Shown: in pieces, positions 1 to 53,046 of the stretch
Layout: each line of letters opens with the position of its first letter
How positions within the stretch are numbered: the stretch's first letter is position 1
Assembly: GCA_015680685.1 (NCBI GenBank)
Contig: MNCI01000808.1
Coordinates: 891,026 to 955,025, forward strand
Direction: 5' to 3'
DNA length: 64,000 nucleotides
From: Gnetum montanum
Taxonomy: Eukaryota > Plantae > Gnetophyta
Notes under the pieces: model-generated
What the model was told of the DNA's origin: nothing
Seen by the model: the letters and a program-made list of their open reading frames with translations, nothing else
Database searches by the model: none
Translations under genes and position numbers: made by a program

Positions 1-1747
1 CCCAAAGAAGGAATTGAGAAAGGAAAGCATCTCGGCAGCAGGGACGCCTGAATTCAAAGCCATGAACAAATCCACAAGCCCAACCATTCAGATTTTCTTG
101 AGAAAGAATCCTGGAGCCCCTCGTTCTAACCAGATATGGGTCACCTCTACTTCATCATATTTTAAGTAGATTTCTCCCCCTTGCCTCTTGGCAGTTACCA
201 CCGTCACCTCACGAGGCTTCTTCGCTCCTGCAGCAATGATCACAAAACATGCTTAGCATAAAAAAATAGAGAGAAGAAACTACGAAAACACATGAGCTCA
301 TGGTGCCTGTCTGTTAACCCACCAAGTCTATACGGTGAGAGGAATAGTGGGAGTTCAACCACCAGGACTGCTTCGAGCATGACCTGCTTAAAAGGTTCTC
401 TCCACTCCTTGTCCAACCAACCCTTCATCCTGAAATGACTGTAGAAAGAGGTGAGTGTGCATAGGTAGGAATAATATCCCTCCCTGCAATGAGCAATCAT
501 GGCTACCCACAAGCTCTTGGTAGAGGCAAATTCGTGTAGGGCTAGCTGTGTTGTGGCCAACTCACCCGGCTGGTCATGAACCCCGCTATCGTCAAGATAG
601 AACCTGGTGATAAGCACACACTATCAACACTCAGCCAAGTATGGGCAACATTGCATAACCAAGCAAAGTAAAGATGCAAAACTCACCCACCAACATAGTA
701 GACGGTTCCCTATGGGTTTTGAAAGTACATCGCCACGTGGTGCACAAAGTACAATGTTTTTTTATTGGTGATAACATTGGTATTCTAGCATATCCTAGAT
801 CTAGGCCAAGAGCCTCAACCTTGTGGAGTGTTGGGTAGACCCTCCTCCCAGCCTTCTTGTGGTTTCATCATTAGAAAGGTATCTCAAGATGGCCTCCATT
901 ATTCCGAACGCCTGCATCTCATCTAAGGAAGACCATACCATGAGACTAAAATGGCTGAGAAGAAATTGCAGGAAGTCTCACGCCCCATCCCTGAACCAAA
1001 CCACTCACTCTCCCAAACGTATCGGGGGAGGGAGAACGTTGGCCATAGGTCTGCCTACATGACATAGGAACCCTTCAAGGTCCAAAATGATCAACCTAGA
1101 CCTTGTCCCTACCCTACACGTCACAACCAATAAATACTGACATCAAATATGAACACAATACATGCACAACATAGAAACACTTAGCCGGTCATAAATGTAG
1201 CATAACATAGCCCCTTGTCTACACATAGCGTAACAAAGATGCGAAAGCCTAGCATAGAGAGAACATGCAAGTAGCTTATCATAGCAAAGAAATAACTAAT
1301 AACATGCTCAAACAAAAACACACGTCACGGTGTTACGTCACATATAAACAAATCCTCCCAAGGATTTTACGTCATGACATGACAAGGTCAAGCAACTTAA
1401 AATGCCCCAACCCTGGAGTAGCGAAAATTGCGGCAGCAGCAACAGCCTTGCATGCAATCACAATGAAACCCTTGCACAACAGCCATGACCAAAAGGAAAA
1501 AGAGGCCACGACAACACAAAAGCTAAAAAAACATGGCCATAGAAAATACAAATAGCAAAACAAATGAGATGCAAAACCAGAGCAGGAAGCAGCAGAGGGT
1601 GCAAGGAGAAAAGGATAGTGGAGACATAAAAACTCATTGAGTCAATGGTGTGCTCTCCTGCACTGAAATGCACGCTTGCGTCCCATGCCTTAGGGTCTTC
1701 TTCACCTCCCTAACCTTCGCAAGCACCAACTGATTCTTAGGAGCCAT
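1..1747 (-). pseudogene. Antisense accessory gene, copy 1 (exon 1 ~1638-1747, exon 2 687-1113, exon 3 323-603, exon 4 <1-227): FCP1/NIF-like then PMD-like
   Basis: ATG GCT CCT AAG (MAPKNQLVLAKVREVK); exon 2 reads RLIILDLEGFLCH...WFRDGA*DFLQFLLSHFSLMVWSS...FQNP; splice boundaries in matching phase (exon-1 donor mutated); internal stops. Confidence 0.8.
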
Positions 1748-1898
1748 AGCCCTACTTGCAAATTTACGACCTTCGCTTTAGAAATTCGCCTCGCTAATCG
1801 ATTAACACAATTTCTCCATGCTCCGAAATCATTGAGTGCTCCGATAAGGATTATGCACTTTTAGGGAGAAAATGGAAAAATTACTAGGATTAAATCCC

Positions 1899-1906
1899 TA
1901 TTTATG
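1899..1906 (-). promoter_or_regulatory. Degenerate TATA box (CATAAATA) of antisense gene, next to a (GA)n tract
   Basis: Positional homologue of TATAAAT at 9925-9931 in copy 2, about 150-170 bp upstream of the start codon. Confidence 0.5.
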
Positions 1907-2627
1907 GTAGTAGTGGAAAAATGAGAAAACTTTCTCTCTCTCTCTCCGATTAATGTGGGGCGCGGTGTGCAACGTAGCATGCTCACCACGACATCACGAC
2001 ACTATTAACATTTAAACCTTGGCACGCTTCAGGTCAATTAATCGCCTTCTCGAAAATAAAAATAATAATATAATAATATTTTTTTTGATTAAAGGTCCAA
2101 AAATACCTTAAACTAACAAACCTAGCATGGTTACGCTCCTTAGGACCCAAAAATAGTAATTTCGACTCATAACGATCACAGTCTGCAATGACGTTAAACT
2201 AACTATGCTCCTACATCAGCAGTCACCTGGCACACCTCGACATAGGTAGTAGCATATTTCCCAATAGTTTCATGTCTTCATTCTTGCACTGGCAGTTCGA
2301 TACACCTTGTACTCACAATTTCATTCTTTTTATCATTATATCAAGGTTTTGCATGTTACAATATGGCAATCTGAAATGACACAAAACTAGTGGTTTAGCA
2401 TTCATATATCGACAATGACACAGCTTCACACTTCACATCAACAATGTCCATATCTTCAAAAATTTTAGACTCTTGTGCCTTGGCGGTCCACCATGACCTT
2501 AAACTAGCAAACTCTCAATCTTTACATCGCCTTTATTTAGCAAGTCGCATCTCGGTGTTGCTTTGTAGATTTACATTTCACACAATCTCTAATGACCCTT
2601 ACCTAGGCTCTCATCTTATGATGGCAG

Positions 2628-5600
2628 GTCACGCAAGAGATGGGAACCCGTCATGCCCTTTCCATGCCTCTAACGTTATCATGGCCACAAGGTAAGATCA
2701 CGAGACAGTTGAACCCTGACACGATTGACTAGGGATTGACTACGATTAACACCGTAGCAACCTTAGAAGCACCCCCGGATTGGCCTAGACACCTAGTCCA
2801 TGCCCTAGATTTAGAGGCCAGGGATGTAACCAAGGACCCTCTTGTCGAGATACCCACGACCATGTCAAGAAGGGAGGTAAAGACATTGAGAGTTAGCTCC
2901 CTCCTAGACACACAAATACATGAGGGCATAGTTAAAAATTTGCAAGAGCACATCGATGTCTTCGCATGGTCATACGGCAACATGCTGGGTCTGGATCCAT
3001 GGCTGATTCAAGATAACATTTTCCTAGACCCCCACGTAAGGGAAATCAAGCAAAAGGCATGTAAGATCAAGCCAGAAATCACACTAGCCATGAGGGATGA
3101 AATCACTAAGTTATACCGATTAGGTTTCATCTGTGCAGTCAACTATTCAGAGTGGGTGTCCAACATCGTTGTGGTTTCAAAGAAAATAGGAGGGATACGA
3201 ATATGTATAGAATTCTATGACTTGAACAAGGCAATGATCAAAGAAAACTTTCCACTCCCGAGCATCAATCAACTCATCGACACCACAGTTGGTCATGGTT
3301 TGTTATCCTTCATGGATGGCTTCTCCAGATACAACCAAATCTGCATCAACCCAAAGCACCAGCTGTCAACAACCCTCATGACTCCATGGGAAACCTTCTG
3401 CTATATCATGATGTCCTTCTGGCTCAAGAATTCTGGAGTGACCTACCAACGAGCCATGACCTACATTTTTAGTGACTACATCCTAGAAACATTAAACAAT
3501 TACGTGGATGGTATAGCAGTTAAATCCAAAGAGGTAGCCTGTCACCCATGCGATCTAGAGTTAGTCCTCAAGTGCTATCAAAGGAACGATTTGCATCTTA
3601 ATCCCAAGAAGTGCATCTTCGGATTAAAGACCGAATGCATGTTAGGGTTTGTAGTATCAAAGGCTGGAATATAGGTGGACCCAGACAAAGTCAAGGCCAT
3701 CATCAACCTAGCACCTCCCACAAACCTTAAAGAGTTACGCGGTTTACAAGGTAGAGTGCAATTCATTCGAAGGTTTATAGTAAGGTTGACCAACAAGTTA
3801 TACCCCATGCAACATCTTCTGAAGAAGGGGGTTGACCTCGAGTGGAAAGCCCAATGTCAACAAGCCTTTGACAACCTAAAGAAGGAGCTCTCGCACCTCC
3901 CAACGATGCACCCGTCACAAAGGGACAGGCCTTTCTTCATATACCTTGCCACCTCCGACGCATCCATAGCAACATTGCTATGTAAGAAGCAGGATGATGG
4001 CTCTGAGATACTAGTGTATTACATGAGCCATGCATTAATAGCATACAAGAAAAAATACAATGAGGTGGAGAGGAACTACCTAGCCTTAGTGTTCATGCTA
4101 AAAAGGTGGCAGCATTACCTATTCCTTAGCACAACCAACATCATTTGGAAAAGCAACATACTCCGGGCTATCACCGGAAACATATATGAAAGTAGCAAGA
4201 TAGCCCGACGGAAGTCCATAACCACAGAATTTGACCTACGCTATGTAAGTCAATCGTCGACAAAGGGCCAAGCCATAGCAACCCAACTTACGGTCTCGCT
4301 AGTCGACGACTAGGTAACCATCAATCCCAAGTTCCCAGATGAATATGTTAGCAATGTTTCCATCATCCCATCACATTTTGAGGTAACCTTACACTTTGAT
4401 AGTGCCTCAACCATGTGAGGAGTTAGTGCCACTACCATGATCACATTCCCCTCTGGGGAAATGTACCCATTTGCTTATCATTTCGCATTCCCTTGCACCA
4501 ACAACATGGTGGAATACGAAGGGCTACTTAGAGGCCTCTTAACTACTCGCACGCTACATGTACAACACCTGATGATCCAGGGAGATTCAAAACTAGTCAT
4601 GAATCAAATCACCGAAGTCTATGCCTACAAGGCTACGCATATGCAACCCTACTATGACCTAGCAAAAGTTTTACTAAAGAAATTCATAACCACTAATGTG
4701 CACCACGTGTCACGCAATGAGAATACTGTAGCAGATGCCTTAGCTACCCTTGCGTTAAACATCCCATCACATTCCTTGGCAAACATGCCAACTGCAATCA
4801 TAGAATGCATAGAACCTATCACTCGGGTGGAACATGTGGCGTTTGTTGACGCTGCGAACACCCCGGAGTGGTACGATAACATTAAAGCATATTTATAGCA
4901 TGGTGAACCCCTAGATGGATTGACATCGGCTTAGAGAGATGCAATCTGCAAGCATGCTCGATAATATGTGCTCATGGGAAATGATGCCCTATGCCAGCGA
5001 TCCTACGATGGGATATTGCTGGCATGCGTGGGTGGTGAGCAGGCACAAAAGGTAGTTAATGAGGTTCATGAAGGGCTGTGCAGTGGACACATAGCACCCC
5101 GGGCTATGGCTATGAAAATTAGATGCCTAGGGTATTATTGGCCCTACATGGAGCGTGACTGCCTGTCGAAAGTCAAGATGTGTGACACATGCCAGAGATA
5201 TGAAAATTTCATACACATAGCACCTATAGACCTGCACCAAACACAAATTATGTGGCCCTTCCAACGATGGGGACTAGACCTCATAGGGCCTACCACGCCT
5301 AAGTCCTTCGCAGGGCATAGCTTCATTATCACCACCATAGAGTATTTTACTAAGTGGGTGGAAGCTATTCCCATGAGGAAAAAGACATCTCAGCAAATCT
5401 ACCATTTCATCCTCAATAACATTGTAACTAGGTTTGGGCTTATGATGACTATTGTGACAGATAATGAACCATAGTTCAGTAGTAAGGAAACCCAGACCTT
5501 GTGTAGCAACCTAGGCATTAAGCAATCATTTTCTTCCCCTTATTATCAATAGGCAAACATGCAAGTAGAGGCTACAAATAAGTCCATCATCAACTTGCTG

Positions 5601-6110
5601 AAGTGGATGCTTAACAATAGCAAGAGGTGGTGGCACAAGAAAATACTGTACGTCCTCTAGGCCTATCGAATGACTTGCAGAACCACGACAAGTAAGATCC
5701 ATTACAGTCTCATTTATAGATCTGAAGCTGTGTTGCCACTTGAGTTGTAGGTACCCTCACTTCGAATGATCCTGTTCGACGTTGTGAGCGAAGCCCAGAA
5801 CAATGAATCATGAACCATCAACCTCTACTCAGTGGAGGAGGAACATGTGTAGACACTGAGACAAATCGAGCACTATCAGAACAAACAACAGCAGAAGCAC
5901 TATGTAGAACCGCATCGATGACCAACGCAGAAGGGAGACCTTGTCCTCAAGGCCATCTGTGAGCACGTAAGTAAGTTCTCAGCCAACTGGAAAGGTCCTT
6001 ACATGATCACTAAAGCCTTTGGGAATGGAGCCTTCAAATTGGAAGACATGTATGGCAACGAGTTTTCCAACCCAGTGAACCACGTGTACCTCAAGTCGTA
6101 CTATGTCTGA
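2628..6110 (+). pseudogene. pol: pol without protease: RT - RNase H - archaeal-type RNase H (aRH) - integrase, with in-frame stops
   Basis: RT SFMDGFSRYNQI, YVDG (YVDD); RH YLATSDASIA; aRH TNNMVEYEGL, IQGDSKLV, HVSRNENTVADALA; INT HEGLCSGH..CDTCQ, GLDLIG, VTDN, NWKGPY; ends TGA at 6110, no chromodomain. Confidence 0.95.
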
Positions 6111-9304: not shown

Positions 9305-9924
9305 AAGGTTATGATGGACTATTAGAGCACAAGAGTGTAGAACTAGAAGAGCGTAGAAAGGCTGAAGGTGTAAAACCGCTGATGTAAAGTGTGAAGCCGT
9401 GTGGCTATCGATATGCAAATGCAAAACTACTAGTTTAGTGTCATTTCGGACAACCAAACTACCACATGAAAAATAATAGTATGCGAAACGGGAAGCTTGC
9501 GAATATGAAAAGTGCCAAATCGTTAACATGAAAATACAAACAACAGACATGAAATTGTTAGAAATTGCAATATTGCCTATGTGGAAGAAGACACAAAAAT
9601 TTCCAATGCAAGCATGTGGTGTTGTTAGTTTAATGTCATTGTGGCCCGTTAGGGATGCTACCATGCTAGAGCTACTTAGTTCAAGGTCTTTTCAGATCGA
9701 TCGTATTGCAATTGGTAGGATTTCTAGTTTAAGGTCTTTTCGGACCCTTAACCAAAAACAAATATATTTTTTGTTTTTGGGAAGGTAAGTAGCTGGCTTG
9801 AAGTGTGTCAAGGCTTTAATGCTAATAGTGTTATGATGTCTTGGCGAGCATGCTACGCTATACAGCATGCTCCGCATTAATCGAAGAGAGAGAGAGGAAA
9901 GTTTCCCTGCCTTGTCATTATGGC

Positions 9925-9931
9925 TATAAAT
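9925..9931 (+). promoter_or_regulatory. TATA box of antisense gene, copy 2
   Basis: ggcTATAAATggg after a (GA)n tract, about 170 bp before exon 1. Confidence 0.6.
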
Positions 9932-10099
9932 GGGGGTTAAACCCTTGCAATTTTGCCATTTTTACCATAAGAGTGCAGAGCCCACATCGGAGCACAAGGT
10001 GATTTCGGAGCACGGGCCGATTGTGATAGCACGGAGAGATTGCGATAGCGGCTAGCAGAGTGATTTTTTAGCTAAGAGCATGCATCTACAATTGAGACC

Positions 10100-13000
10100 A
10101 TCGCTCCTAAGACTCATCTGGCACTCGCAAGGGTTGAGGAGGTGAAGGAGGTCCTAGGGCATGCACCTCAAGCACCCATTGTGGTACGACATAGCATGCC
10201 GTTGACCCAGTAGGTTACTGTATACCTTTTGCCTCTTTGTATTTGTGCTTTCCGTTGTCTTTTGCTCTTCTTTTACATTCATTCTTGGCTATCTACATTT
10301 TATGTGGTCAGGTTAGTTTAACCTTTGTATCGCTACCATCACCATCTCAATTGTGGCAGATGTATGAACATTATGTTGTGGTTACATGCAGGGTTGCTGA
10401 AACTGCCACTGCCGTGGTTGTTACAACCACGGGGGCTGGGGTAGTTTAAGTTGCTCGACCCTAGCATGCCGTAACATAAAACCCCCGAGAGGGCTAGGCC
10501 ACATAGAATGTGGTGACATGACACATGTTTCATTAGAGCATGTTGTCAATTGCTTTGTTTTTATGCTAGGCTTATTCGCATGTTCTTGCTATGGCAAGCT
10601 TTCACGCCCTTGCTACGCTATGTACTGGCAGAGGGTCATGCTATGCTATGTACATGGACTACTAGAATTTATGTGGTTGTGCATGTATTACCTTTAATTA
10701 TGCTACTAACTTTCACTTAATTGTGACGTTTAGGGTAGGGCCGAGGTTCAGGCTTATCGTTTTGGACATTAGAGGGGTCCTATGCCATGTGAGTAGACTT
10801 GTGGCCAACACCCCTCCTCCCCAGATATGCATGGGGGTGCAAGGGGTTTGGTTTAGAGATGGGACATAGGACTTCTTGCAATTCTTTCTTGAATACTTTA
10901 GTGTGATCATCTGGTCCTCCTTGGAGGAGGTGGAGGCATCCGGCATAGTAGAAACCATGCTTCTTGGGACAAGTCTCGGCATTTTGAGATTTTTTACCGA
11001 CAGGGTAGTCATGAGTAGTCACAGAGAGGGGTCCAGCCAACACTCCATAGGATTGAAGCATTTAGCCTAGATCTAGAACATGCCTAAATACCGTTGCTAC
11101 CACCATTACAACACATTGTTCCTCGCATGCTACATTGCGACGGGCTTTCAGAACCCACAGGGGACTATCTATTGGAATAGTGGGCAAGTTTTGCAGCCTT
11201 TCTCCACTATGTTGTACAATGCTAGCCATATTAGCCGAATGCTAAGAATATGTTTTTGTCACCAGGTTCTTTATCAATGATGATGGGGTTCACAACTAAC
11301 CAGGTTTGCTGGCTATCGCGTAGCTAGCACTACAAGAGTTCTCTTCTGCTAAGAACTTGTAGGCAAGTGTGATCGGTCAGTGTAGGGGGGAATACCATAC
11401 TTACCCAAGTATATTTCATGCTTCCTACACTCACTGTAAGGAGAAGGGTTGGCTGGATGAGGAATGGGAAGAACCCTTCAAGCCAGTCACGGTTGAAAAA
11501 GTCATGACGGCTGAACTCCCACCGTTCCCATTGCCATATAGACCTGGTGGGTTAAAGAGTAGGTGTCACATGCTTGAGTGTTTCTGTAACCCATGCATTT
11601 TTTGTGTTGTCATGCTAAGCATGTTTTATGAAAATTGTTACAAGGGTGAAGAAACCCTAGGAGGTGATGGTGGTGACTACCGAGATGCATGGGGCAAACA
11701 TCTATTTCAAATCTGACGAAGTAGCAGCATGTTAGTGCTCGTTAGACCAGGGGGCCTCTAACTCCTTGCTCAAGAACATCCAAAGGATAGGGCTCATGCA
11801 CCTATTTATGGTCCCAAACCCGAGTGTTCCTGCTGTAGAGATGCTTTTCCTATTCAACTCCTTCTCTGAGAGAGCAAGATGCTTCCACATGTGCGTACAG
11901 GGTGTGTAGGTGATCATTGAAATCAATGATCAACTATTCATAGACATTTTTGGTGTTCCTACTGATGGCGTCCCCATAGGGTCGAAGCGCATGCAGGAAC
12001 TGCCCTTTGGATGAAGGATATTGAGGACTGGTTGAGGCTCGTTAAGGAGAAAAAAGGGTTCTTCATGGATAAGCGTAAGGAAAGCCCTACCATGGAGATT
12101 TACCCAATCTTCCATGCTCACACATTCCCTTAAATGCTCACCTAGGGAAAGGTCCTAGGACTGGAGCAAGCCTAGATAATGTGGGAGGTTATGAAAGAGG
12201 GGGCCTATTACAACTGGGCTAGCTTCCTATGCAAGGGCTTGCAAGATGAGATTTTGGGACTTCGTGAAAAGATAGATTCCCACTCCAACATACACTATTC
12301 TTTCTACATCGGCTGTCTGGAATGCTTCATGGAGTTTCTGGTGGTCCAAGAGGATGGAGCATGGGCCGTACGAGATCGCAACCAGATTCCCAGGCCATGG
12401 ATTCGCCAAATCCTCAAAACCATGCAAGCCCAAGATCTCTTAGAAGTAGTCAAGGAGTCATTTTCTGTAATGACCAAATGTTTGGTAGCTCACAGCATTC
12501 GTGGTCAAGATAGCATGGGAGAGACGCCCCCTGTTATAGTCGATAGCGTGACGCAGGGAGAGCCTCTCATAGCAGAGACCGTACCTAATGAGTTGCGAAG
12601 GAAGAGACCTCCCCCACCTAGGGAAACCCTCTATGTCAAGGGAGAGGAGGGACGAAGACTACGTCTTAAGCTATAAAGGACACAACCCCCCATTAGTAAA
12701 CACTTTTGTGTAATGCTTACTTTACTATTGCTTGCTACGCTAACCTACGCTAGATGGTTTAGCATAGCATTTTCTTTGAGCTAATTTGTTTTGAACTGAC
12801 AAAAACATGCTTCTTTGCTAGTAGAGGAAGAAGAAGAAGAAGAAGAAGGTGATGAGGAAGTGTCTTCCCTGAGGAAAAAAAATAAAGACATGGAGGCCCC
12901 AGTCTCGGAGGAAAGATCCCAGGTTAAAAATGAGGGAGCTCCTGTTTCTAGGGTAGGGGCTCTAGTCATTAGGGAGCCTCCTATCAATGAAGAGGCATCT

Positions 13001-13649
13001 CCCTCGAATAAAAAGGATGTTGGGCTCCTAAAAGGAAAGGCATGAATGCATGAGGAAGGGGCTTGTATGGACTTGGTAGGGCCCTCCACCAGGGCTATAG
13101 CCATCATCTTGCATTAGCAAGAAAAAAGATCGCAGCCGGATGTTGGTGAGTTTGGCGATACGTCTATCTTGTTGTAATCCATTTTTTCCATTTTTGATAA
13201 GCTTAGTCATGTAACAGATGCTACTACTGATGTTGTGGGACCCTCTCCTATTCATGCAGATTCATAGGCTATGAATGCGGATTCATATTATGGACGACTG
13301 TGGACTGTGAATGCTGAACCTAGCGACAGGTGTTGGATGGACATCACGATAGAGGAGATCTGGCATCACCTCAGGCTCGATCTAGACCAAATACCTCTTG
13401 AGACCGATGCAGGCCTTTCTCAAGTTAGTTGCTTTGCTATGTAGATGTAGATGCTTATGCTACGTTGTAGTTTGCATTTGAAACATAACTCATTACTTCA
13501 TTCTTATGATGTAGACTCTAAACGAGGGTGCAAGGTTTGTAACGGGACGGAATGAAGAACTCGTGGAAGGCAAGATAGGGGAGGATGGCACATAGGTAGC
13601 TTAAGCGGAGGTGAATGACGAAGGTGATGTAAATAAAGACAATCCATGA
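10100..13649 (+). pseudogene. Antisense accessory gene, copy 2 (exons ~10100-10209, 10734-11183, 11266-11546, 11644-12695, 12825-13145, 13218-13423 with internal deletion, 13515-13649): FCP1/NIF-like + PMD-like
   Basis: RLIVLDIRGVLCH, WFRDGT*DFLQFFLEYFSVIIWSS, LKHLA*I*, YNTLFL, FQNP; FNSFSERARCFHM..IEINDQLFIDIFGVPTDG, YNWASFLCKGL, IGCL; LRRKRPPP; start codon mutated to ATC; coiled-coil exon mostly deleted. Confidence 0.85.
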
Positions 13650-13799
13650 TAACATGAGATTTTCTTTTGAAATTTTTGAAATGTTGAAATTTTGTAAAAG
13701 TTTCGCAAACATTGCCAACAGGTGAAAGTTTTGAATAACATGAAAACCTTTAGAAAAGAAACTAATTTTGCATTTACTTGAATATCACGTAAAGATTTC

Positions 13800-14400
13800 A
13801 TGCTTTCGTATGCTAGTTTTAGGCCATTTTGGGCCATTGCTATTTTTACACCATTGCGGGCCATTGCGTAACATGCTAAAAGGATTATATGTTAATGAAG
13901 TGAAAAGCAACCATGCTAGTTTTAGGCCATTTTGGGCCATTGCCAAAAGAGATGGTGCATTACCAAAGAAAAAACGATGATGCTAGCTTTAGGCCATTTC
14001 AGGCCATTTCCAAAAGAGATGACGCATTACCAAAGAAAAAACGATGATGCTAATTTTAGGTCATTTCGGGCCGTTGCCATTTTTAGGCCATTTCAGGCCA
14101 TTGCGTAACATGCCATAAGGATTATATGTTAATGAAGAAAAAAAAAACCATGCTAGTTTTATGCCATTTTGGGCCACTGCCAAAAGAGATGGTGCATTAC
14201 CAAAGCAAAAACGATGATGCTAGTTTTAGGCCATTTTGGGACATTGCGTAACATGCTAGAAGGATTATATGTTAACGAAGAGAAAATAAACCATGCTAGT
14301 TTTAGGCCATTTTGGGCCATTGCCAAAAGAGATGGTGTGTTACCAAAGCAAAAATGATGATGCTTGTTTTAGGCCATTTTGGGCCTTAGTGTAGCATGGC
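13800..14400 (-). repeat. Post gag-PR array; core GGCC-N6-GGCC-TA-AAACTAGC organised in higher-order units
   Basis: tgctagttttaggccatttt/cgggcc repeated about 10 times with recurring intervening blocks. Confidence 0.9.
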
Positions 14401-14477
14401 AGAAGGAAGAGATGTTATCAAAGCGAAAGGCAGTGAATGCACAAGGGATGGTAGCCGAGCAGGAAGCAATAGGATTG

Positions 14478-17400
14478 CTACGCTATGCATAGGTGCTTCT
14501 TAACCTGTCGTGGGTTGGTTGGAGTGTAGAGCCGAGGTTTTTCACCAAGGCTCTAATTTACATCATCATCCTCTGCTTGGAAGGGTAACTCAACCCATGC
14601 ATTTTCGATTTGGGAGTTGGCTCCCTGGGCTAACCCCTCCATTGGGTGGTTAATGCATGCATGATCAGGTGCCTCATGCTTGGAGGTGGTGACCTCTGAG
14701 CCCTACTCCATGTCTACGTTACTGATTGCTTGCGTTGCTACCTCATCACCACGGATCATCACCTCCCTACCTACGTGTTGTAGGTGGAATTCCCAGTGTA
14801 TAGGTGAGGAGACAGCTCTAAGTTGCACTAACCATGATCTTCCCAAGTTCAAGTTAAACCCGGGCATTTCCTCGACCATGATGAATGTTTCCTCTATGGG
14901 GAACTGGTCCCCTGCTACGAAGTTTACATGAACTGTGCCCTTCACCAGGATGTGTGCCCCATTAAAGGACCTTAGAAATGACATTGTTGTGGGTTTGATC
15001 TGGTCGACCAATCCTAATTTATCTAAAATAGGAAAGGGAATGATGTTTGTGGTGGCCCCATCATCCATGTGTACCCTTCGGATCCGGTGTTGGCCGACCC
15101 AAATTATGATGAAGAGAGGTGCCATAGTCACCTGACCCCCTTCATGATCTTCCCTAATGGCATCATCATTGAAGGTCAATCGAGGTGTTCTAGACCCTGT
15201 GGGTACAGAGGGAAGCATAACCAAATGGATCACTTCCTCTTCCGCAGACATATTCTCATCAACCAGAATCGTCGTTTACATGCAGATTAGAGCCTCGCGG
15301 TGGGGTACAGATGTCATGATTAGGTCGTACAAGCTCAGCGTGATGTTTTTCTACTTTAGAACTTGCTAAGGGTGTCCATAAGGTCTTGGTCAACCCCTTG
15401 TTTGAAGATGAATCTCCTGAGGAGAGGTGACTTTGGATCTGGATTTAGATCCATGTCGGCAGAGTGATGCAGGCTACGTAGTCATGTCAACCTTCATCTT
15501 TGGGAGTGAAGCTACAGGTGCAAGGGACAAAGGTGGAGGCCTGGGAAGACCTTTGATGATACTCCCATTGGACATCTCATCCATCCAGTGTACTGCTCGC
15601 CTTGTGGGACGAGGAGGCTATTCAGCCTTGTTGCGCAAGGTAGGGGCTATCGAAGGTGTCAGGCCCCTGATGACAAATGGAGCTAAAGGCATTAACTGAT
15701 GGGGCCACGTGGCCCCACCAATAGGTGGCACAAAGACAGGTGCCCGTCGTGGGACTTTTAGGATGAAAAGTTGTTGCACATTTTGATTGGTCTCCCATGA
15801 TACCGGTGCACTACGTTGAGGCACACTGATCATGAATGGCTGCTAAGGTAACCTAAAGTGGTCATCGATGCCAATGGTGTTGATTGTGTAGCCAACATTG
15901 TTGGTGTTGAGGGGGTCTCTATAGACATACATAGACTAGTTTTTAGGGTGGATTAGATTGCTTTCATCAAGAACTAGTTTCCCTAGGTCGATTAATCTTT
16001 GGATGTCATCCTGCAATGATAGACAATAATCCGTGTTGTGGTCACACTGTTGGTGGTAATCACAAAACCTATCTAGTCTGAAACCCTTAGGAACTAGATG
16101 CTCATTTGGCAAGGCTAAAGAGAGATTCCTAAGGAGCTCATAGTATCATTGATGCCTTGCATTTTTCTCTTTTGACATCCACTTATGTTGGATGTATCCC
16201 GCTGCAAGAAGCTACCTCAGAAGCTCTAAAGGCTGTAGAGGTAGTGGGGTGTACTTTGAGTGGTCTTTGCACTCAAAGTTGGGTTTGGGTTATGCAGATG
16301 TCTCAGGTGTGGGTGTAGTAGATTACGACATGTGGCCCAATTTGGGTGCAGGGTTAGCCACTTGTGTGTCTAGTTTCTTACTATTCTTTCTACTATTGTT
16401 GCTAGGTTTTGGCTTGGCCTTAGTCGCCACAGTGGCCACCATGGTTGTTGGGGCTTTATCCTTTTCCTTCTTTGCGAAGGTGCTCTTGTAAGTGATGTAG
16501 GCTGGGTCTTTGCTTACCTCGGCTACATCCTGTAAGCTCTTAGTTTGGGCAAAAGCTTGACTAAGAGAGCGAGGAGCGAGGTAGTACAGTTTTCACTTGA
16601 TGAAGTCATTCACTACACCCTTAAAGATGGCTAGCAACTGGGCCTCCACGATGGGCTCGCAGATTTCATTAAGGGTTGCGCTCCAACGTTGAATAAAATT
16701 TTGGACTTGTTCTAGTGGGTCTTTCTTCACACTTATCAGCTAATCCAGTGTGCTTTTTAGCTTCAAGTTGTACTTGAAGTGTGTTACAAACTATGTCAGC
16801 AGCTCTTCCAAATTTGAAATGGATGAGTGTGGCAACGCATAGTACCAATCTAGAGCTTTCCCTGCTAGGGACATAGCGAAGACGTGAATGATCGTGTCCG
16901 ACCACTGTTGCAATAGCAAAGATTCAGATCTAAAATTGACGAGATGCACGTTAGGATCTCCCTTCCCATCGTACTTCATGAAGTATGGGAGAGACATCCC
17001 CAGGGGTAACGTCAAAGCAAGGATTGCAGGGTTGACGGGGTCATCTTGGTAAAAGTCCATAACTTGCATCGTGTCGAACCCAGCAGCTTTGAGGCATTTT
17101 ATTTCCTCAGTAAGGGTCTGGATGAGCTAAAATGCTTGGTCCAGACATGGCGTTGTAGATGGTTGAGGGGCTGCTGAGGTAGCTCCCACATGTGGCATGG
17201 CGGGGGTGATAGTGTGACCCATCGACGATACCACCAGGGTGACCCCTGTAAGCGGTGCAGCCTGTGTTGTCCACCACCTAGTAGGCAGTGTTGTTAGGGT
17301 AGTAACCGCTGGTTGGGCTGCTAGATGAACCCCTTGCATCGTTGGCAGCATAGAACATAGCCTTTGTGTTGGGTTGCGCATTCTGCGAGGCTTGGTGTGT

Positions 17401-17935
17401 TTGAGAGTGCACATAGTGAGACATATGCGATGGTTGTAGAATAGGCAAAGAAGCAACTAGGCCCACCATGTGGATGGGCTGGGACCCCTCCACAGTGGGT
17501 GGAACTAGCGTGAATGTAGGAATAGGGGTAGAAGTAGAAGTCATGTATGTTTGCAAAGTTGGTATGGTATGCACATGTGGCAGGGTAGCCATAATTAGCA
17601 TATGCTACCTTGCAAGGATCAACTGTTGAACAGTTTGCAATGGGATAGTAGTTGCAAACGGTACAGGAAAAATAGGCAAGAGTGAGCATTGAAACGCCAC
17701 GGGATTGGCGTGGCTACCCATAGTAGCTATAACTATAGGTTGTAGAAGCGTAGGCGTAATCAAAAAGGGAGTGGTAATAGAGCACGGCTTCGCCCAGAAG
17801 GACTAGGTAGGAGGAACAAGAGTAGGGCCAGTTGGACCTTCCTCATCCGATTGGGAATCTAGTTCCCCCTGGCTATCTTGGAAAGCATCATCTTGATTGG
17901 ATGTTATGTCTGGTTCCTCCCTAAGGCTAGCCAAC
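14478..17935 (-). pseudogene. gag: gag-protease ORF (second tandem copy), ending at a TAG stop conserved between copies
   Basis: KYDGKGDPNVHL (retrotransposon gag), RFCDYHQQCDHNTDYC knuckle, PR VHMDDGATTNII..NLNLGRSWL. Confidence 0.9.
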
Positions 17936-20900: not shown

Positions 20901-21446
20901 TGTAGTTGTAGCTTGCAGAAGCATAGGCATAATTACAAAGGGAGTAGTAATAGATGACAGCTTGGCCTAGAAGGATTTGGTAGGAAGGATAGGATCAGGG
21001 TCGATTGGACCTCCCTCATCCGATTAGGAATCAAGTTTCTCCTGTCCATCTTGGAAGGCATCATCTTGGTTGGATGTTATGTTCTATTGCTCCCCAAGCC
21101 TATCCAACTGTATTAATTGGTCCAAAAGCCTTTGGTATTCTTATGTTAAAGGTAAAGAAAGGCTAGGAGTAGGTACAAATGCCTTCCCGTTGCAATAAGT
21201 GAACTCGAAGCTACGTTTGTCCTCGAGTTCATGTATGTTAAAGGGTAGATTGGCCTGCACCTTCGCATAGAGGAAATTGTAATGCTCATGTTGTTGGGCC
21301 AATCCCTTAGGTCCTCAATTTTGGATTCTAAGAGATTGACACATTTCCGGCATTGGGTTCAGCAGTTTTTCGGCACCAGTAGTGCCTTGAACTGTGATGG
21401 GAACTTCAACGTTTTAGGTATGGGTAGTAGTAGTTGAAAAAGTCAT
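17936..21446 (-). pseudogene. gag: gag-protease ORF (first tandem copy; internal deletion near 19580)
   Basis: MTFSTTTT start at 21446; KYDGEGDPNAHL; CDYHQQCGHNMDYC; IDDGATMNVI. Confidence 0.9.
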
Positions 21447-23803: not shown

Positions 23804-23809
23804 CCAAAT

Positions 23810-26960: not shown

Positions 26961-27237
26961 GACTAATGAAACATAAAAAATTTTCCCCCGCAGTAATCCA
27001 AAGACATGATTAGTTCTATCAATTGGTTTAGAACCCAAGCCTGGAAACTCCAGATGAGCCCTCAGTTCCGATGGCGTTTGGGCTGAGCTCATGGAGGATG
27101 AGATCATGCAACGCCTGTTAATCAGCCTAGAACAAATTGCTTTTGCGGTAAAAGCAGGACCTGCGTAGGTAAGCCATGTTATAGTTGTATTATTCTTATG
27201 TGTAATTTCGGTGGCAATGCTAACAAATCGTAGGATC

Positions 27238-34049: not shown

Positions 34050-34172
34050 CTTGTTACGCTATGCGCAGGAAGAGGGTTATGCTATGCTATATGCATAAAT
34101 TGCTAGACGTTGCTACGTTGTACATGTATTGCACTTAGACATGATGCTAACACTTGTTGATGGATGGCATAG

Positions 34173-37100
34173 GGCATGGTTGAGGCCCAGGCTGATTGTT
34201 TTAGAAGTTAGAGGGGTCATGTGTCATGTGAGCAGACCTATGGCTAATGCTCCTCCTCCCTAGATACATATGGGAGAGCAAGGGGTTTGCTTCAGGAAAG
34301 AAGCATAAGACTTCCTACGATTCCTCCTCAACCACTTCAGTGTGATCATTTGGTCATCCCTAGAGGAGGAGGAGGCAGCTGACATAAGAGAAGCCATTTT
34401 TCTTGGGGCAAGCAAAGGAATTCTGAGGTTTCTAACCAATGGGATGATCACGAGGGGTAGGGAGAAGGATCCAGTCAGTACCAAACAAGGTTAAGGTGCT
34501 TGGCCTGGATCTGGGAGATGCTCGAGTATAGCTACTACCACTGTTTCAATACACTGTTTCTTGCACATTTTATGATGATATGCTTCAAGAACCCTCAAGG
34601 AACTATCTACTATGCTAGCAGGTGAGTTTTACAGCGTTGTTCTACTATGTTTGTGTGACACTAGCCATAGTGGCCTAATGCTAATAGTATGCATTTGCTA
34701 CCAAGTTCTTCATCAACGAGGATGGGGTTCATGACCTACTGGGTCTATTGGCCATAGCACAAATAGCCCTATAGGAGTTCTCTTCTACTGAGAACCTGCA
34801 AGCAAGTGTGATCGATCAATGTGGAGGTGAATACCACACCTACCTAGGCGTATATTCTACTCTCTATAATCAGTGCAAGGGGCAGGGCTAGTTGGATGGA
34901 GAGTGGGCAAAACCCTTCAAACCAGTCACGATTGAACAAGTTCTGGTTGAACTCCCATAGTTCCCACTGCCATACTGACCTGGTAGGCTGAGCTGTAAGT
35001 GCCACATGCTTAAGTGTATTTGCAATTTTTGAATTCTCTACATTTTTTGCTAAACATTTTTTTGAACTATTGCAGGGGCGAGGAAGCCTCAGGAGGTGAT
35101 GGTGGTAACCACTGAGACACAGGGGATGAATGTCTACTTCAAGTATTGGGAAGTAGAGATGAGCCAACATTGGTTGAATGGTGGGACCTTGGACTCCCTG
35201 GTCTAGAACATCAAAAAGGAGGGACTTATGGATCTATTCCTGGCCCTAAATCCGAACGTTCCTGTAGCCAAGATGCTTACCCTAGTAGAATCCTTTTTCA
35301 ACAAGGTGAACTGCTTTCTCCTACGTGTGCATGACGTGTGGGTGATCATTGACATTAATGACCAGCTATTCGTAGATCTATTCAGTGTCCCTACCAAAGG
35401 CATTCTGATAGGGTCGATGTCCAAGGAGTTGACCCTTCAGAAGAAGGACATTCAGGAGTGGTTAGGACTTACCAAGGAGCTTAAGGGGCTCCCTATGGAG
35501 AAGCTCAAAGAAGGACCTGTTAAGGAGTTTTACCCTCTTTTCCATGCTCGTGCATTCCCCCAGCTGCTTACCTAGGAAAAGGTCCTGGGGCTTGAGCATG
35601 CTTGGATAATGCATGAGGTTATGGAGGAGGGGGCCCATTACTACTGGGCCAAGTCTCTATGTAAAGGCTTGCAGACTGAGATCTTGGCGCACCGTACGAA
35701 AACAGAGTCGCATTCCAACATCCATTACACCTTTTATGTAGGCTGCCTTAAGCATTTCCTGGAGTTCCTAGTGGTTCAGAAGAAAGGAGTCTGGTTCATG
35801 CGAAATCATGACCAGATTTCTAGATAATGGATCCACCAGGTCTTCTAGACCATCCGAGCCTAAGATCCCCAAAAAATAATTGGGGAGTCATTTTCTGTAA
35901 TGACTAAGGAGCAGGTGGCCCGCAACGTTCATGTCTAGGACAACGTAGGAGAGACGTCCCCCACCATGGACAGTAGTGTGTCATGTGGTGAACGTTTCAT
36001 AGCTGAGACTGGGGCCAGCACGTTATGGCAGAAGAGGCCTCCCCTAGCTAAGGAAACCCTTCGCATGGAGGAGGAGGAGGGGCAAAGACTATAGCTTAAA
36101 CTGTAGAGGACACAACATTCTATTGGTAAGTTCTTTTATTTAATGCTTACTTTCTTGTTGTCTGCTACGCTATGCTACGCTAGATGGCATAGCGTAGCGT
36201 AGCATCTGCCTTAGGCTAACTTGCTTTGAGTTAATGCAAACGTGTTTTTTGACCACCAGAAGAAGAATTAGAAGAAGAAGGTGATGAAGAGGTGTCGACC
36301 CCTAAGAAGGGGATGATGAATAAAGACACATAGGCCCTAGTCTCAGGAAGAAGGGCTTTGGTCAAGAAGAAGGAAGCTCCTGCGGCTAAGGAAGGGGCTC
36401 TCATTATTTGGGAGAATTCTTCTATTGAGGAGTCTCCCTTGAATAAAAATGATGCTGGTCTCCTCAAAGGAAATGCACCAGCGCATGAAGAGGAGGTCCG
36501 TAGGGACCCAGTAGAAACCATTTGTCAGGCCACCTTCATCATCTTCCATCAGCAAGAAAAGAGACAGCCATCAAATATTGGTGAGTTTGGAAATATGTTT
36601 TCCTTTTCATAGTCCATTTTGATCATTGCTAATATGTTTGGTTATGTGATAGGTGCTACCACTGATGCCACAGGATCCTCTCTGGTTCACATGGGATCCT
36701 AGGCTAAAATCCTTGACAAGTTTGTATATATGCAGGGGATTGGTGATGACATGATTAGTCACCCTCAGTAGGTGGATCGTGAAGTAGGTAAGTAGTAGTG
36801 TTTTCTGATCTCACGTTGTTATGCTAAAATTTCTTGCATTTTCTACTTATGCTATGCTAATGTGACTAGTGTGCACTTTGTGTCATGGAAGCCTCTTAAC
36901 TTAAATGGGACCTAACACGACCTTTGAAAGTTGGTGTTATGTCCACATTCCCACTGGAAGTGACCGAGGTATCTCGTCATGCATATGACGAGGTTTGCAA
37001 ATGCTCTTTGCACTCAGCACGCTCCCTCTCGGAATATAAGCATGCCAACAAGAACTTGTGGAAAAGGGTCTAGAAGGCTAAGCAAAGGAAGGCTGACCTG

Positions 37101-37936
37101 AGGGCTGAGGTGGAGGACCTCAATTCGAGGAACAAGTTCCTCATAGCCCACAACACTAACAACGAGGACTGGCGCATAGCTGTGGTAGACCACGCTAGGT
37201 TTTGGACAATTGCACATCAAAATGTCAAGACCACCTATGAACTAATAGAGCAATAGATGCAGATGGACCGTTTACACCAGAAGTGTCAGGATCTAAAAGA
37301 CTTCAGCACCAAGGTTTATGAATGGGGGTAGACCCAAAGAAACCATAAACATATGTATAAATAGGAAAATGCTGCCCATCATAAGCTATATGAAGATGCT
37401 ACTGTGGAGGAATTTATGTATGAAGCATTCATAAATGCCATCAACACTTCTAAGGCTTATGCCAGGTTCAAAGAGTAGGTAAAGGTCATAAAATCTCATG
37501 ACTAGAAGGTGGCCCTTCCCACAGGAGAGACCGCAACCATCTCCTTTTCTCTGGGACTACCAAGGTGGACACCCATTGAAAGGGAGAGAGCTGCTACAAT
37601 GGATGCTAGACCAGGAAAATGGTGTTGGGTAGATATCATGGCAAAGGAGGTCTGGCATTGCCTCGATCTCCGTTTAGATGAGATATCGTTCGAGATGGAT
37701 GAGGGCCCTTCTCAGGTTAGTCACTTTCTACTGTGTTAATTTATGCTCTATTGTACTTTGCATTTTTTGTTCTAGCTGATAGCTTTGTTCCCATGATACA
37801 GGCCCTAGATGAGGGTGCAGTGCCCATACAGGGAGGAAATGAAGAGTCAACGAGGAACAAAGCAGGGGAAGGCGATCCACAAGGCAATGATGCAGGAACA
37901 AAAGGCTAAAACAATGTGAATAGAGACAACCCATGA
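34173..37936 (+). pseudogene. Antisense accessory gene, copy 3 (exons 2-8, including coiled-coil exon)
   Basis: RLIVLEVRGVMCH..DFLRFLLNHFSVIIWSS..FNTLFL..FKNP; VESFFNKVNCFLL..DINDQLFVDLFSVPTKG..YYWAKSL..VGCL; donors gtgagt, gtaagt; ends AAC CCA TGA. Confidence 0.85.
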
Positions 37937-47479: not shown

Positions 47480-48415
47480 TTAGATGTAGTATGGCTTGAG
47501 GTACGAGTGATTCATTGGGTTGGCAAACTCATTGTGGTCCATGTATGCCAGCTTGAAGGCTCCATTCCCGAAGGCTTTAGTGACCATGTAAGGGCCTTCC
47601 TAGTTGGCTGAGAATTTGCTCATGTGCTCACGGATGGCCTTGAGGACAAGGTCTCCCTTCTGTACTAGCTGCCGATGTTGGTTTTCATGGTGCTTTTGTT
47701 GCTGCTTGCTTTGGTAGTGCTCTATGTGGCTTAGTGTCTACACGTGCTCCTCCTCTATTGAGTCGAGGTCAATGATCCACGACTCATTGTTCTAGGCTTT
47801 GCTCACGATGTCAGATAGAATCATCCAGAGTGATGGTACTTACAACTCAAGAGGCAACAAAACTTTAGATCCATAAACAAGGTTGTAAGGAGTCTTACTT
47901 GTCACAGTTCTGCATGTCGTCCTGTAGGCCCATAGAATGTAGAGGATTTGTTTGTGCCACCACCTCTTATTGTTGCTAAGCATTCGCCTCAGCAAGTTGA
48001 TGATGGACTTATTTGTAGCCTCCACCTGTTTGTTCGCCTATGGGTAATAAGGATAGGAGAATGATTTCTTGATGCCTAGATTACTGTAAAAGGTTCAAGT
48101 TTTCATATGACTAAACTATGGCCCATTGTTGGTCAAAATAGTCATTGGAAGCCCAAATCGCGTTACGATGTTGTCCAGGAGGAAGTGGAAGATTTGTTGA
48201 GATGTCCTCCTCCTCAGGGGAATAGCTTCCACCAACTTAGTAAAATACTCAATGGTAGTGATAATGAAAATATGCCCTATGAAGGACTTAGGCGTGATAG
48301 GTCCTATGAGGTCTAGTCCCCATTGTTGGAAAGGCCATGTGATCTATGTTGGGTACAAGTCCATGGGTGAGACATGTATGAGATTTGTGTGTCTTTTGCA
48401 CATGTCACACATTCT
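47480..48415 (-). pseudogene. Integrase core and C-terminus (N-terminally deleted)
   Basis: WPFQQWGLDLIG, VEATNKSII, KGPY; collinear with about 5180-6110. Confidence 0.9.
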
Positions 48416-49446: not shown

Positions 49447-52400
49447 GATGGGGCTAAGGCCAATTCTGATTGTCTTAGAAATTGCAGCGATCCTGTGTTA
49501 CGTAACCAAACCCGTGGCCAATGCCCCTCCTCCCCAGATACGTGTGGGGAAGCAGGGGATGTGGGTCAAGAAAGGAGCATAGGAGTTCCTACAATACCTC
49601 CTCCAACACTTCAATGTGATCATTTGGTCATACCTAGAGGAGGAAGAGGCGGTCCTCATAATAGAAGCCATATTGCCTAAGGCAAGCCAGGGAATCTTGA
49701 GGTTTTTGACAGATGGAGCAATCTTTAGCAAGAAAGGAAAAGGATCTAGTCAATGCCCCATAGGGTTGAGGTGTTTATCCTAGATTTGGGATATGTCTGA
49801 GTACAGCTACTACCATTCTTACAACACACTATTCATTGCACGTTATATGGCAACGTGCTTCCAAAATCCACCAAGAATTGTCCACTATGCTCGCGGGTAA
49901 GTTTTTTGCAACTTTTTTCCGCTATGTTATGCAACGCTTGCCATATTGGCCAAATGCTAATAGTATGATTTTATTACCAAGATCTACATCAACAAGGAAG
50001 GCGTTCATGATCGATTGGGTCTACTGGCTATAGCACGTATAACCCTGCAGGAGTTCTCTTCTACTGAGAACCTATGGGTGGGTGTGATTGGTCAATGTAG
50101 GGGTGAATACCACACCTACGCACACATATACCTCATTCCCTATGATCAGTGCAAGGGGTCTGGTTGGCTGGATAAGGGGCAAGCAAAACCCTTCAAACCA
50201 ATCATCGTTGAACAATTTCTAGTTAATCTTCTATTGTTCCTATTACTGTAAATACCTGGTAGGCTAAACAATAAGTGTTGCATGGTTAAGTGTCTTTGCA
50301 ATCTTTGGATTTTCTACATTTCTATGCTAAACGTTTCTTGTGAAAACTATTATAGGGGAAAAAAAGCCCCAGGAGGTGATGGTTGTAACCGCCAAGACAC
50401 AAGGGGCAAATATCTACTTCAAGTATGGAGAAGTAGATATGAGCCAACACTAGATAAATGGTGTGGCCTTAGACTCCTTGGTCTAGAATATCCAAAAGGC
50501 TGGGCTTATGGATCTATTCCTAGCCCCAAATCCAAATATTCTTGCTGTCGAGATGCTCTCCCTAGTCAACTCCTTTTCCGAGAAGGCGAGCTACCTTCGC
50601 ATGCGCATATAGGGCATACGGGTGATCATTCAAATCAATGACCAGCTGTTTTTGGACCTCTGCTGTGTCCCTGCCGATGGCATCCTCATTGGGTCAAAGT
50701 CCAAGATGGAGCTAACCCTTCAGATGAAGGACATCGAGGAGTGGTTAGGGATTTCCAATGGGCGAAAGGAGCTCCCCATGGAGAAGCTTAAAGAAAGAGC
50801 CACTAGGGAGGTTTACCCTATCATCCATGCTCGTGCATTCCCCCAGTTGCTCTCCCAAGAAAAGGTCATGGGGATCGAGCAAGCTTGGGTAATGTGTGAA
50901 GTTTTGGAGGAGGGGGCTCACTACAACTGGGCCAAATTTTTATGTAAAGTCTTGCAAACCGAAATCTTGGGGCTCCATAAGAAAATGAAGTCCTGTTGGA
51001 ATATCCATTATGCCTTTTACATAGCCTATCTAAAGTATTTCATAGAGTTCCTTGTGGTTCAGTAGAATGGAGTCTAGATCATGCGAAATTGTAACCAGAT
51101 TTCCAGACCATGGATTACTAGATCCTCTAGACCACCTGAACCCAAGATCTGATAGAAATAATTGGGAAGTTGTTCTCTGTGATGACTAAGGATCAGGTGG
51201 CTCACAATGTTCGTGGCCAATATAGCATAGGAGAGACACCCCCCACCATAGATGGTAGTGTGTTGCGGGGGGAACGTTTCATAGCCGAGGTTGCAGCTAG
51301 TAAGCTATAGTGGAAGAGGCCTCCTCTAGCTAAGGAAACTCTTCGCATAGAGGAAGAGGAGGGGCAAAGATTGTAGCTTAAACTGTAGAGGATGCAACCC
51401 GCTATTGGTAAATGCTTTCATTTAATGCCTACTTTGTTATTTTCCACTACGCTAGGCGTCGTAGCATAGTGTAGCACCTACCTTAAGCTAACTTGTCTTG
51501 AGCTAATGCAAAAATGTTTCTTAACTACCAGAAGAAGAAGAGGAAGAAAAAGAAGGCGATGAAGAGGTGTCTCCTAAAAGGAAAGGCACCAGCACATGAA
51601 AAAGGGATCCTTAGGGACCTAGCAGGAACCTTTGGCTAGGCTACTGCCATCGTTTTGCATCAGCAAGAAGGGAGACCGTAATTTGATGCTGGTGAGTTTG
51701 GCAATATATTTTTCTTATAATAACTCATTTTGGCCATCTTTGACATGTTTAGTTATGTGATAGGTGCCACCTTTGCTGCTACAAAACCTCCTCTGTTTCA
51801 CATGGAATCATCGGCTGAGGTCCCTGATAAGTTTACGTTCATGCAGGGAATCGTTGATGACATGATCAGCCATCTTTAGAAGGTGGACCTTGAGATGGAT
51901 AAGTAGTAGTGTTAGGTGCTCTTGCATTGTTGTGCTAGAACTTCTTGAGTTTGCTACTTTTTCTATACTAATGCGATTGGTATGCTCTTAGTGTCATAGC
52001 AGCCTCTCGACTCAAATGGGACCCAGTACAGCCTTTGAAAGTAAGTGTCGTGCCTACATTCCTACCTAAAGTGATCGAGGTGTCTCGTTGTGCATACAAC
52101 AAGGCTTGAAAATGTGCTTTGCACTCGGCACACCAATATGGAAGTATAAGCGTGTCAATGAGGACCTGTGGAAACGGGTCCAAAAAGTCTGAGCAAAAGG
52201 AGGCCAACCTGAGCATCAAGGTGGAGGATCTCAAGTTGAGGAACAAATTCCTCATATCCTGTGATACTAATAATGAGGACTGGCACACAGTTGTTATATA
52301 TTACACCAGATTTTGGACTTTTTTGTGTCAGAACGTTGAGGCCACCCGTGAAATAATAGAACAGCCAATGCAGATGAACTTGTTAGCCCAGAAGTGTCAG

Positions 52401-53046
52401 GATTTAAAATATTTCAGTGCCAAGGTTTACAAATGGGGGAAATCCCAGAAAAATCATAAACATATGTATAAACTAGAAGATTCCACCGATTGAAAATTGT
52501 ACAAAGATGCTACTGTGGAGGCATTTACATAGAAAGCATTCATAAATGCTATTGACGCTTCAAAGGCCTATGCCAAGTTCAAAGAGAAAGTAAAGGTTAA
52601 AGAATCTTTTGACTAGAAAGTGAACCTTCCCATAGGAGAGACTACGACCATCTCCTTTTCCCCGGGAGCACAAAGGTGGACAACCACCGAAAGGGAGAGA
52701 GCTGCTACAGATGCTGAACCAAGAGAAAGACATTTGGTGGATATCATGCCAGAGGAGTTCTGACGTCACCTTAGGCTCAGTTTAGACTAGATACCCTTTG
52801 AGACAGACGTGGGCCCTTCTCAAGTTTGTTTCTTGCTGCTGTATTAATGCTTATGCATTGTTGTGACATGCGTGCATTGCTTTAGCTGACTACTTCATTC
52901 TTACGATGCAGGCTCTAGATGAGGGCGCAAGGCCCATAGAGGGAGGGAATGAAGAATTGGCAGAGGATAATGCAGGGGAAGGCAATGCAGAGGGAAATGA
53001 TGCAAAAGTTGGTGATGAAGATGATGCAAGTGGGAGCAACCCATGA
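49447..53046 (+). pseudogene. Antisense accessory gene, copy 4 (exons 2-8; TATA and exon 1 deleted near 48925)
   Basis: ILIVLEIAAILCY..EFLQYLLQHFNVIIWS..YNTLFI..FQNP; IQINDQLFLDLCCVPADG..HYNWAKFL; coiled coil SEQKEANLSIKVEDLKLRNKFL; acidic last exon ending AAC CCA TGA. Confidence 0.85.

Follow-up and report, generated by a model that had tools for sequence, protein, structure and literature searches.

A decayed, intron-bearing antisense gene with a NIF/FCP1-like N-terminal domain in Tat-type Ty3/gypsy retrotransposons of Gnetum montanum

What is encoded opposite the polyprotein of the old retrotransposons of long terminal repeat (LTR) type within a 64,000-nucleotide stretch of Gnetum montanum DNA (contig MNCI01000808.1, positions 891,026 to 955,025; hereafter the window)? 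A sequence-only reading had proposed a spliced antisense gene, present in four diverged copies, that joins an FCP1/SCP-type phosphatase-like domain to a PMD-like domain. Our computational analysis revealed that (i) the antisense gene was a real coding gene in the past, under purifying selection while its family diversified; (ii) a HAD domain of NIF/FCP1 type is the most likely identity of its N-terminal domain, in which every copy lacks the motif I acid/base Asp and the acidic pair of motif IV that binds Mg; and (iii) its central domain (exon 4), acidic tract and helical tail are placed in no known family. We consider it probable that the gene belongs, as a lineage-specific accessory gene or extra open reading frame (ORF), to an old family of Tat-type Ty3/gypsy LTR retrotransposons.

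Self-comparison located the copies at 1–2127 (minus strand, copy 1) and, on the plus strand, at 9713–13900 (copy 2), 33620–38000 (copy 3) and 48914–53300 (copy 4). Their pairwise nucleotide identities are 63–70%, with 76% between copies 3 and 4. The strands of the flanking protease and pol sequences bore out the earlier placement of all four copies antisense to their elements, every copy lying on the strand opposite its element's protease or pol. A tblastn search with the gene's own open pieces returned exactly these four copies and one faint extra match (27079–27186).

The pattern of differences between the copies carries the conclusion that the gene was coding. Read in the proposed frame, the copies vary most at third codon positions and least at second ones, and local p-values go down to 0.001 for exon 2 and to 1e-6 for exon 4. 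The ratios of nonsynonymous to synonymous substitution rates (dN/dS), calculated by the Nei–Gojobori method, were 0.20–0.38 for exon 2, 0.19–0.47 for exon 3, 0.13–0.37 for exon 4 and 0.28 for exon 7; the bootstrap upper bounds of pN/pS were below 0.9, and shifted-frame controls for exons 2 and 4 gave dN/dS values of 0.5–1.9. These selection tests used four sequences only and a simple method, and stop codons were left out. On the internal branch separating copies 1 and 2 from copies 3 and 4, 22, 9 and 33 substitutions fell on the first, second and third codon positions, respectively (p = 0.0011); the dN/dS near 1 that had been named beforehand as evidence against the gene was not what this branch displayed. 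The private changes of copies 1, 3 and 4 are flat across codon positions, as expected for decay following insertion. Stops are fewest in the gene frame among all six frames, and the six-frame stop counts together with the codon-position patterns ruled out chance ORFs and coding on the sense strand of the element. The proposal of a spliced, antisense, protein-coding gene within an LTR retrotransposon is thus upheld by conserved splice sites and phases and by dN/dS well below 1.

The same data bear on whether the gene is a passively carried host-gene fragment, acquired by transduction, that never served the element and merely inherited its coding signal from the host gene. LTR retrotransposons are known to capture host sequence (PMC7264820), and RNA reads contain, in their loose ends, an expressed sequence related to the exon 2 core but diverged from it. 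We consider such an origin very unlikely, however, because purifying selection acted on the branch separating the element lineages, when the gene was already inside the element; in addition, purifying selection was detected in all exons tested, and the gene has held its place in four lineages whose divergence reaches 37%.

In their present state, all four copies are broken by many stops, frameshifts and deletions. Exon 2 contains 2–5 in-frame stops per copy and is frameshifted in copy 3, exon 4 is frameshifted in copies 2 and 4, and copy 1 has a 24-nt gap in exon 2. The same exon 2 codon is a stop in all four copies, through three different stop codons; RNA reads that stem from diverged relatives have, in their loose ends, a sense codon at this site. 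The longest open stretches span 166 codons (12176–12673, exon 4 of copy 2) and 150 codons (50613–51062, copy 4).

The gene comprises ~8–9 exons with a coding sequence of ~3.3 kb and a product of ~1000–1100 residues, which agrees with the ~1100 residues suggested before (Table 1). The earlier lengths of exon 2 (copies 2 and 4) and exon 3 (copies 1 and 2) were confirmed; exon 4 measures 1050–1052 nt, and the differences are explained by one-base and three-base alignment gaps. Introns 2–5 are ~70–130 nt long, with GT donors and AG acceptors kept in most copies. The phases from exon 1 through exons 2, 3 and 4 to exon 5 agree with the frames carrying the conserved protein, and the splice phases described as consistent hold over this range. 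Three or four more exons follow exon 5 in copies 3 and 4, and copy 2 is without ~0.9 kb of 3′ exons present in those two copies. At the 5′ end, where the gene had been credited with its own TATA box and a protein start reading MAPK, the TATA-like box was found in copies 1 and 2; the start codon is ATG in copy 1 only (1747), and the corresponding triplet in copy 2 is ATC (10100). The objection that the exon 1 ORF is unable to join exon 2 was dropped, as copy 2 has a phase-2 GT donor at 10210 that is in phase with exon 2 and removes an in-frame stop; copy 1 has no GT at that place.

The host elements lie in a mosaic of old, nested and fragmented plant Ty3/gypsy elements, and no repeat pair exceeds 82% identity in the window. 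The element pol contains the domains RVT_1, RT_RNaseH_2, RVT_3, an integrase zinc domain and rve. RVT_3, an additional archaeal-type RNase H (aRH; E = 1.9e-17 and 1.8e-16), is located between the RT_RNaseH_2 and integrase domains. Because the aRH sits between the RNase H (RH) and the integrase (INT), we assign the element to the Tat type. The closest named relatives of the aRH–INT part are from Cryptomeria (only 45% identity) and Taxus (40% identity), and angiosperm Tat elements reach 37–39% identity.

The position of the gene follows from the flanks that the copies retain. In copies 2, 3 and 4, a protease-containing ORF on the opposite strand lies directly past the 3′ end of the gene. In copy 1, the reverse transcriptase (RT)–RH–aRH–INT region begins ~600 nt past the upstream region of the gene and runs away from it. 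In copy 4, an integrase remnant comes next after the upstream region of the gene and is collinear with the copy 1 element beyond an internal deletion; the sequence past this remnant is collinear with the post-integrase part of the copy 1 element, to which it is 70–78% identical. Therefore, the flanks of copy 1 (RT), copies 2 to 4 (protease) and copy 4 (integrase) together give the order gag–protease, antisense gene, pol. The gene-bearing spacer between gag–protease and RT–RH–aRH–integrase is 5–6 kb long, and every copy with a kept flank places the gene between protease ORF and RT, not between pol and the 3′ LTR.

Several further features in and around these spacers were observed. Two tandem gag–protease units (14690–17936 and 18036–21109, minus strand) are 72–75% identical to each other, and the antisense gene occurs after the first only. 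A tandem array of ~67–170-bp units (68–89% alike) occupies 13810–14428, between the 3′ end of the copy 2 gene and the protease ORF, and short repeats are also present in the matching spacers of copies 3 and 4. On the sense strand of the element, ~200 nt past the protease ORF (~14504, minus strand), a donor-like site G|GTYAAG is kept in copies 2, 3 and 4; it is a possible 5′ splice site for an intron of the Ogre kind, which would cover the whole antisense gene. The faint match at 27079–27186 (plus strand) is to the second-last exon (33% over 36 residues, E = 8e-5); it is flanked by an RT remnant (23779–24535, minus strand) and a protease remnant (28965–29604, minus strand), a place where a fifth copy in a much more decayed state would be expected.

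The exons were searched in separate pieces, and those of exon 2 were 35–66 residues long because of the stops. The 66-residue piece past the shared stop matched the Pfam NIF family (PF03031) at profile positions 45–81 in copy 4 (E = 0.0057) and copy 3 (E = 0.29). In the ESM Atlas, NIF accounts for all 30 clusters nearest to the copy 4 piece, at a score of 0.93, with 199/256 features and a recognition of 3164. The AlphaFold2 model of this piece is all-helical, with a predicted local distance difference test (pLDDT) score of 63, and does not inform on the fold. A profile of the NIF-like piece returned nothing from 5.8 billion proteins within a length window of 36–115 residues.

The motif strings quoted in the sequence-only reading are present in the copies, and the order and spacing of the exon 2 motifs fit NIF as known from SCP1 and FCP1. 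In detail, (i) motif I, for which DxDx(T/V) is expected, reads D-L-E-G-F in copy 1, D-I-R-G-V in copy 2, E-V-R-G-V in copy 3 and E-I-A-A-I in copy 4, so that its second Asp is missing in all four copies; (ii) motif II, a strand ending in Ser, is present as V-I-I-W-S-S in copies 2 and 3 and L-M-V-W-S-S in copy 1, and copy 4 has V-I-I-W-S-Y; (iii) motif III, ~40–45 residues past motif II, has Lys in copy 2 and Arg in copies 1, 3 and 4; and (iv) the acidic pair of motif IV (DD or DN) is replaced by A-C in copy 2, A-H in copy 3 and A-R in copy 4, and is non-acidic in copy 1. On these sequence grounds, exon 2 probably encodes a homolog of NIF. Since the catalytic residues are missing in all copies, the domain is predicted to be a pseudophosphatase, and since it was under selection without them, their loss predates the decay. 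The proposed NIF/FCP1 domain is thus backed by sub-threshold Pfam matches at the expected profile positions and by the Atlas clusters, and the catalytic residues of a phosphatase were not found. Inactive members of the NIF family exist, for example TIM50.

A short core of exon 2 also appears in RNA. Reads of three oligo-dT RNA runs match only the 37 nt at 34320–34356, which encode the hydrophobic strand of motif II; to either side of this core they pass into other sequence, which also reads open. Their source is a diverged relative that is expressed and represents a host gene or another element family.

The assignment of exon 4 to PMD or DUF1985 did not find support. The four exon 4 pieces (50613–51062, 35207–35572, 35576–35824 and 12176–12673) have no match to PF10536, DUF1985 (PF09331) or Transposase_28 (PF04195) at E ≤ 10. 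A four-row exon 4 profile found no relative and no PMD protein among 1.84 billion representative proteins; its sole match, a translated tandem repeat, is spurious. The comparison of exon 4 with PDB sequences gave nothing, and the AlphaFold2 model of a 150-residue exon 4 piece (pLDDT 42.7) is unusable. The nearest ESM Atlas clusters are unnamed Streptophyta clusters (0.89–0.86), and the cluster ranked 4, which bears DUF1985 (0.83), is no more than a lead. Extra ORFs of Tat elements frequently combine PMD and a coiled coil, which makes a very divergent PMD plausible; we lean slightly against this identity for exon 4.

Exons 2, 3 and 4 are joined in phase, which favors the claimed FCP1–PMD fusion; its PMD identity was not recovered. 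If the FCP1/SCP-like domain were fused to a genuine PMD, the gene would be a transposable element (TE) counterpart of the host modules that combine PMD with an inactive phosphatase, acting on RNA polymerase II's C-terminal domain (CTD), on transcription or on silencing. The in-phase joins and the DUF1985-bearing cluster would agree with such a fusion, and PMD with a coiled coil is common in the extra ORFs of Tat lineages (PMC4408406) and present in 57% of Ogre elements (PMC6317226). We regard it as unlikely, however, given that none of PF10536, PF09331 and PF04195 was matched by any exon 4 piece, that the 1.84 billion representatives, presumably including annotated plant PMD proteins, hold no relative of exon 4, and that the structure model scored so low. 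Short motifs of exon 4 appear similar to PMD motifs, a further point in favor of the fusion.

Four RNA runs from this species supplied reads, which were aligned to copy 3 at 80% likeness. The stretch itself is in no listed run. The depth on copy 3 is mostly 0–5, reaching 14 only in run X1, and nearly all reads are less than 90% alike and fit partially. Run X1 is strongly strand-biased over exon 2, and the RNA strand is not assignable because the library protocol is not known.

The explanation of the gene as an accessory gene with a NIF-like start has to be weighed against the following results, all of which tell against it: (i) none of the four copies in the window is intact; (ii) the four RNA runs list no junction reads at the predicted introns of copy 3, and 7–8 reads of X1 lie inside predicted intron 2; (iii) the best NIF match scores 16.8 bits, below the gathering score of 21.8, and the pieces of copies 1 and 2 have no Pfam NIF match; (iv) profile and single-sequence searches of the PDB sequences with the exon 2 piece returned no NIF protein (SWP82, matched by a single piece at E = 1.2, was set aside as chance); (v) no relatives outside the window were found by the profile searches of 1.84 and 5.8 billion proteins or by a metagenome contig scan; and (vi) the function of the protein is purely inferred.

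The second of these points would also be expected if the locus comprised two or more separate antisense transcription units, with the NIF-like exon and exon 4 in different proteins, or if its main product were a regulatory antisense RNA, for which roles have been discussed in connection with such ORFs (PMC7264820). The absence of reads joining the exons and the reads running through intron 2 agree with this arrangement, but the phases of neighboring exons agree in several copies, the short introns have canonical ends, and protein-level constraint was found in every exon tested. Separate units or a regulatory RNA are therefore highly improbable.

The gene has its own TATA promoter, which lies in the spacer between gag–protease and pol and points away from pol. 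For a single accessory gene, we propose the following mechanism. The introns may outlast retrotransposition because, lying antisense to the genomic RNA, they would not be spliceable from that RNA. The dead NIF domain would act by binding or scaffolding rather than by catalysis, and a nuclear protein would fit with the basic cluster that closes exon 4 together with the acidic tract. Such a protein may have helped the element's own expression or its escape from host silencing.

The known antisense extra ORFs of Tat elements carry PMD or Transposase_28 and are placed between pol and the 3′ LTR (PMC4408406, PMC11963269, PMC7264820). The Tat antisense ORFs with PMD, alone or together with a coiled coil (gymnosperm lineage III, lineage V and the 3′ region of Ogre) resemble the present system in the second RNase H and in the antisense extra gene, and a helical C-terminal part is a possible common feature. 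These are single ORFs matching PF10536 between pol and the 3′ LTR (PMC4408406, PMC6317226). By contrast, the gene described here is located between protease and RT, has ~8 introns and a NIF-like start, and has no PF10536 match. The Retand antisense ORFs with Transposase_28 (TRP28) are likewise conserved antisense accessory genes of the Tat clade, for which a regulatory role has been proposed, whereas the present gene has no PF04195 match. In Ogre, gag–protease and pol are also set apart and the aRH also lies between RH and INT; the Ogre spacer is a spliced intron with a mean length of 274 bp (PMC6317226), whereas here it is 5–6 kb and hosts a gene on the opposite strand.

The likeness to the NIF/FCP1/SCP HAD phosphatases (PF03031) consists in the order and spacing of motifs I–III and in an NP-containing segment after motif IV. 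Unlike these phosphatases, the exon 2 domain has no DxDx(T/V) (best in copy 1), its motif IV pair is replaced, its hidden Markov model score is sub-threshold, and it is transposon-encoded. The Arabidopsis proteins MAIN/MAIL1 with PP7L, and the PMD–phosphatase fusion MAIL3 (PMC7156037), share with it the idea of a TE-related domain combined with an inactive phosphatase. PP7L and MAIL3, however, are PPP-family host genes, whereas the domain here is HAD-family-like and PMD is not demonstrated. A bolder form of this comparison holds that the retrotransposon family captured or invented a multi-exon nuclear effector in which a dead CTD-phosphatase fold was joined to a very divergent PMD-type domain. 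This effector would have been expressed from an intron splitting the polyprotein and would have served as a TE mimic or antagonist of the host silencing modules that pair PMD with a pseudophosphatase, or as a reader of the phosphorylated RNA polymerase II CTD. We rate this as quite unlikely.

The literature search found no FCP1 or CTD-phosphatase domain linked to the extra ORFs of LTR retrotransposons and no description of this gene family; the extra-ORF domain table of one survey has no NIF entry (PMC6317226). The surveyed extra genes of plant LTR retrotransposons are single ORFs beside an LTR, with PMD, Transposase_28 or Athila-ORF1 domains. What is new relative to them is a gene that bears introns, lies inside the gag–protease/pol spacer, begins with a probable dead NIF/FCP1-type domain and was kept by selection. 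The functions of plant LTR retrotransposon extra genes are obscure, and this gene would broaden the known range of transposon accessory proteins; it is a candidate for how the dominant elements of a large-genome plant handle host transcription or silencing. Retrotransposition assays use an antisense-intron marker, of which the introns of this gene are a natural counterpart.

Table 1. Coordinates of the antisense gene copies and of neighboring element features in the window.
Feature	Position	Strand	Remarks
TATA-like box, copy 2	9925..9931	+	~170 nt upstream of exon 1 start; from copy 1/copy 2 alignment
TATA-like box, copy 1	~1899-1906	-	Common to copies 1 and 2
Exon 1, copy 2	10100..10209	+	110 nt, ends in phase 2
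Intron 1, copy 2	10210..10733	+	GT 10210, AG 10732-10733
Exon 2, copy 2	10734..11183	+	450 nt, NIF/FCP1-like domain, 3 in-frame stops
Exon 2, copy 4	49447-49896	+	450 nt
Exon 3, copy 2	11266..11546	+	281 nt, no family match
Exon 3, copy 1	323-603	-	281 nt
Exon 4, copy 2	11644..12695	+	1052 nt, one frameshift; conserved central domain, basic cluster at end
Exon 5, copy 2	12825..13145	+	321 nt (also 321 in copy 3); acidic run, then mixed charged sequence
Exon 6 start and remnants of last two exons, copy 2	13218..13646	+	
Copy 1: exon 1, exon 2 (687-1113), exon 3, start of exon 4	1..1747	-	Cut by window edge
Copy 3: exons 2 to last	34173..37936	+	Upstream part not alignable
Copy 4: exons 2 to last	49447..53046	+	
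Protease-containing ORF, copy 2 element	14706..15350	-	Convergent with 3′ end of gene
Protease ORF equivalents, copy 3 and copy 4 elements	38831-39475 and 53737-54381	-	
RT, RNase H, second (archaeal-type) RNase H, integrase, copy 1 element	2733..5633	+	Divergent from gene
Integrase remnant, copy 4 element	47957..48415	-	

Two features lie outside the gene-bearing elements. A different Ty3/gypsy element at 62496–63908 (minus strand) contains an RNase H and an integrase without a second RNase H, and is 37–40% identical to the Tat integrases of the window. An assembly gap (a run of N at ~58800–59350) is located inside an AT-rich stretch, with a GC content of 0.27–0.36 over 56–60 kb.

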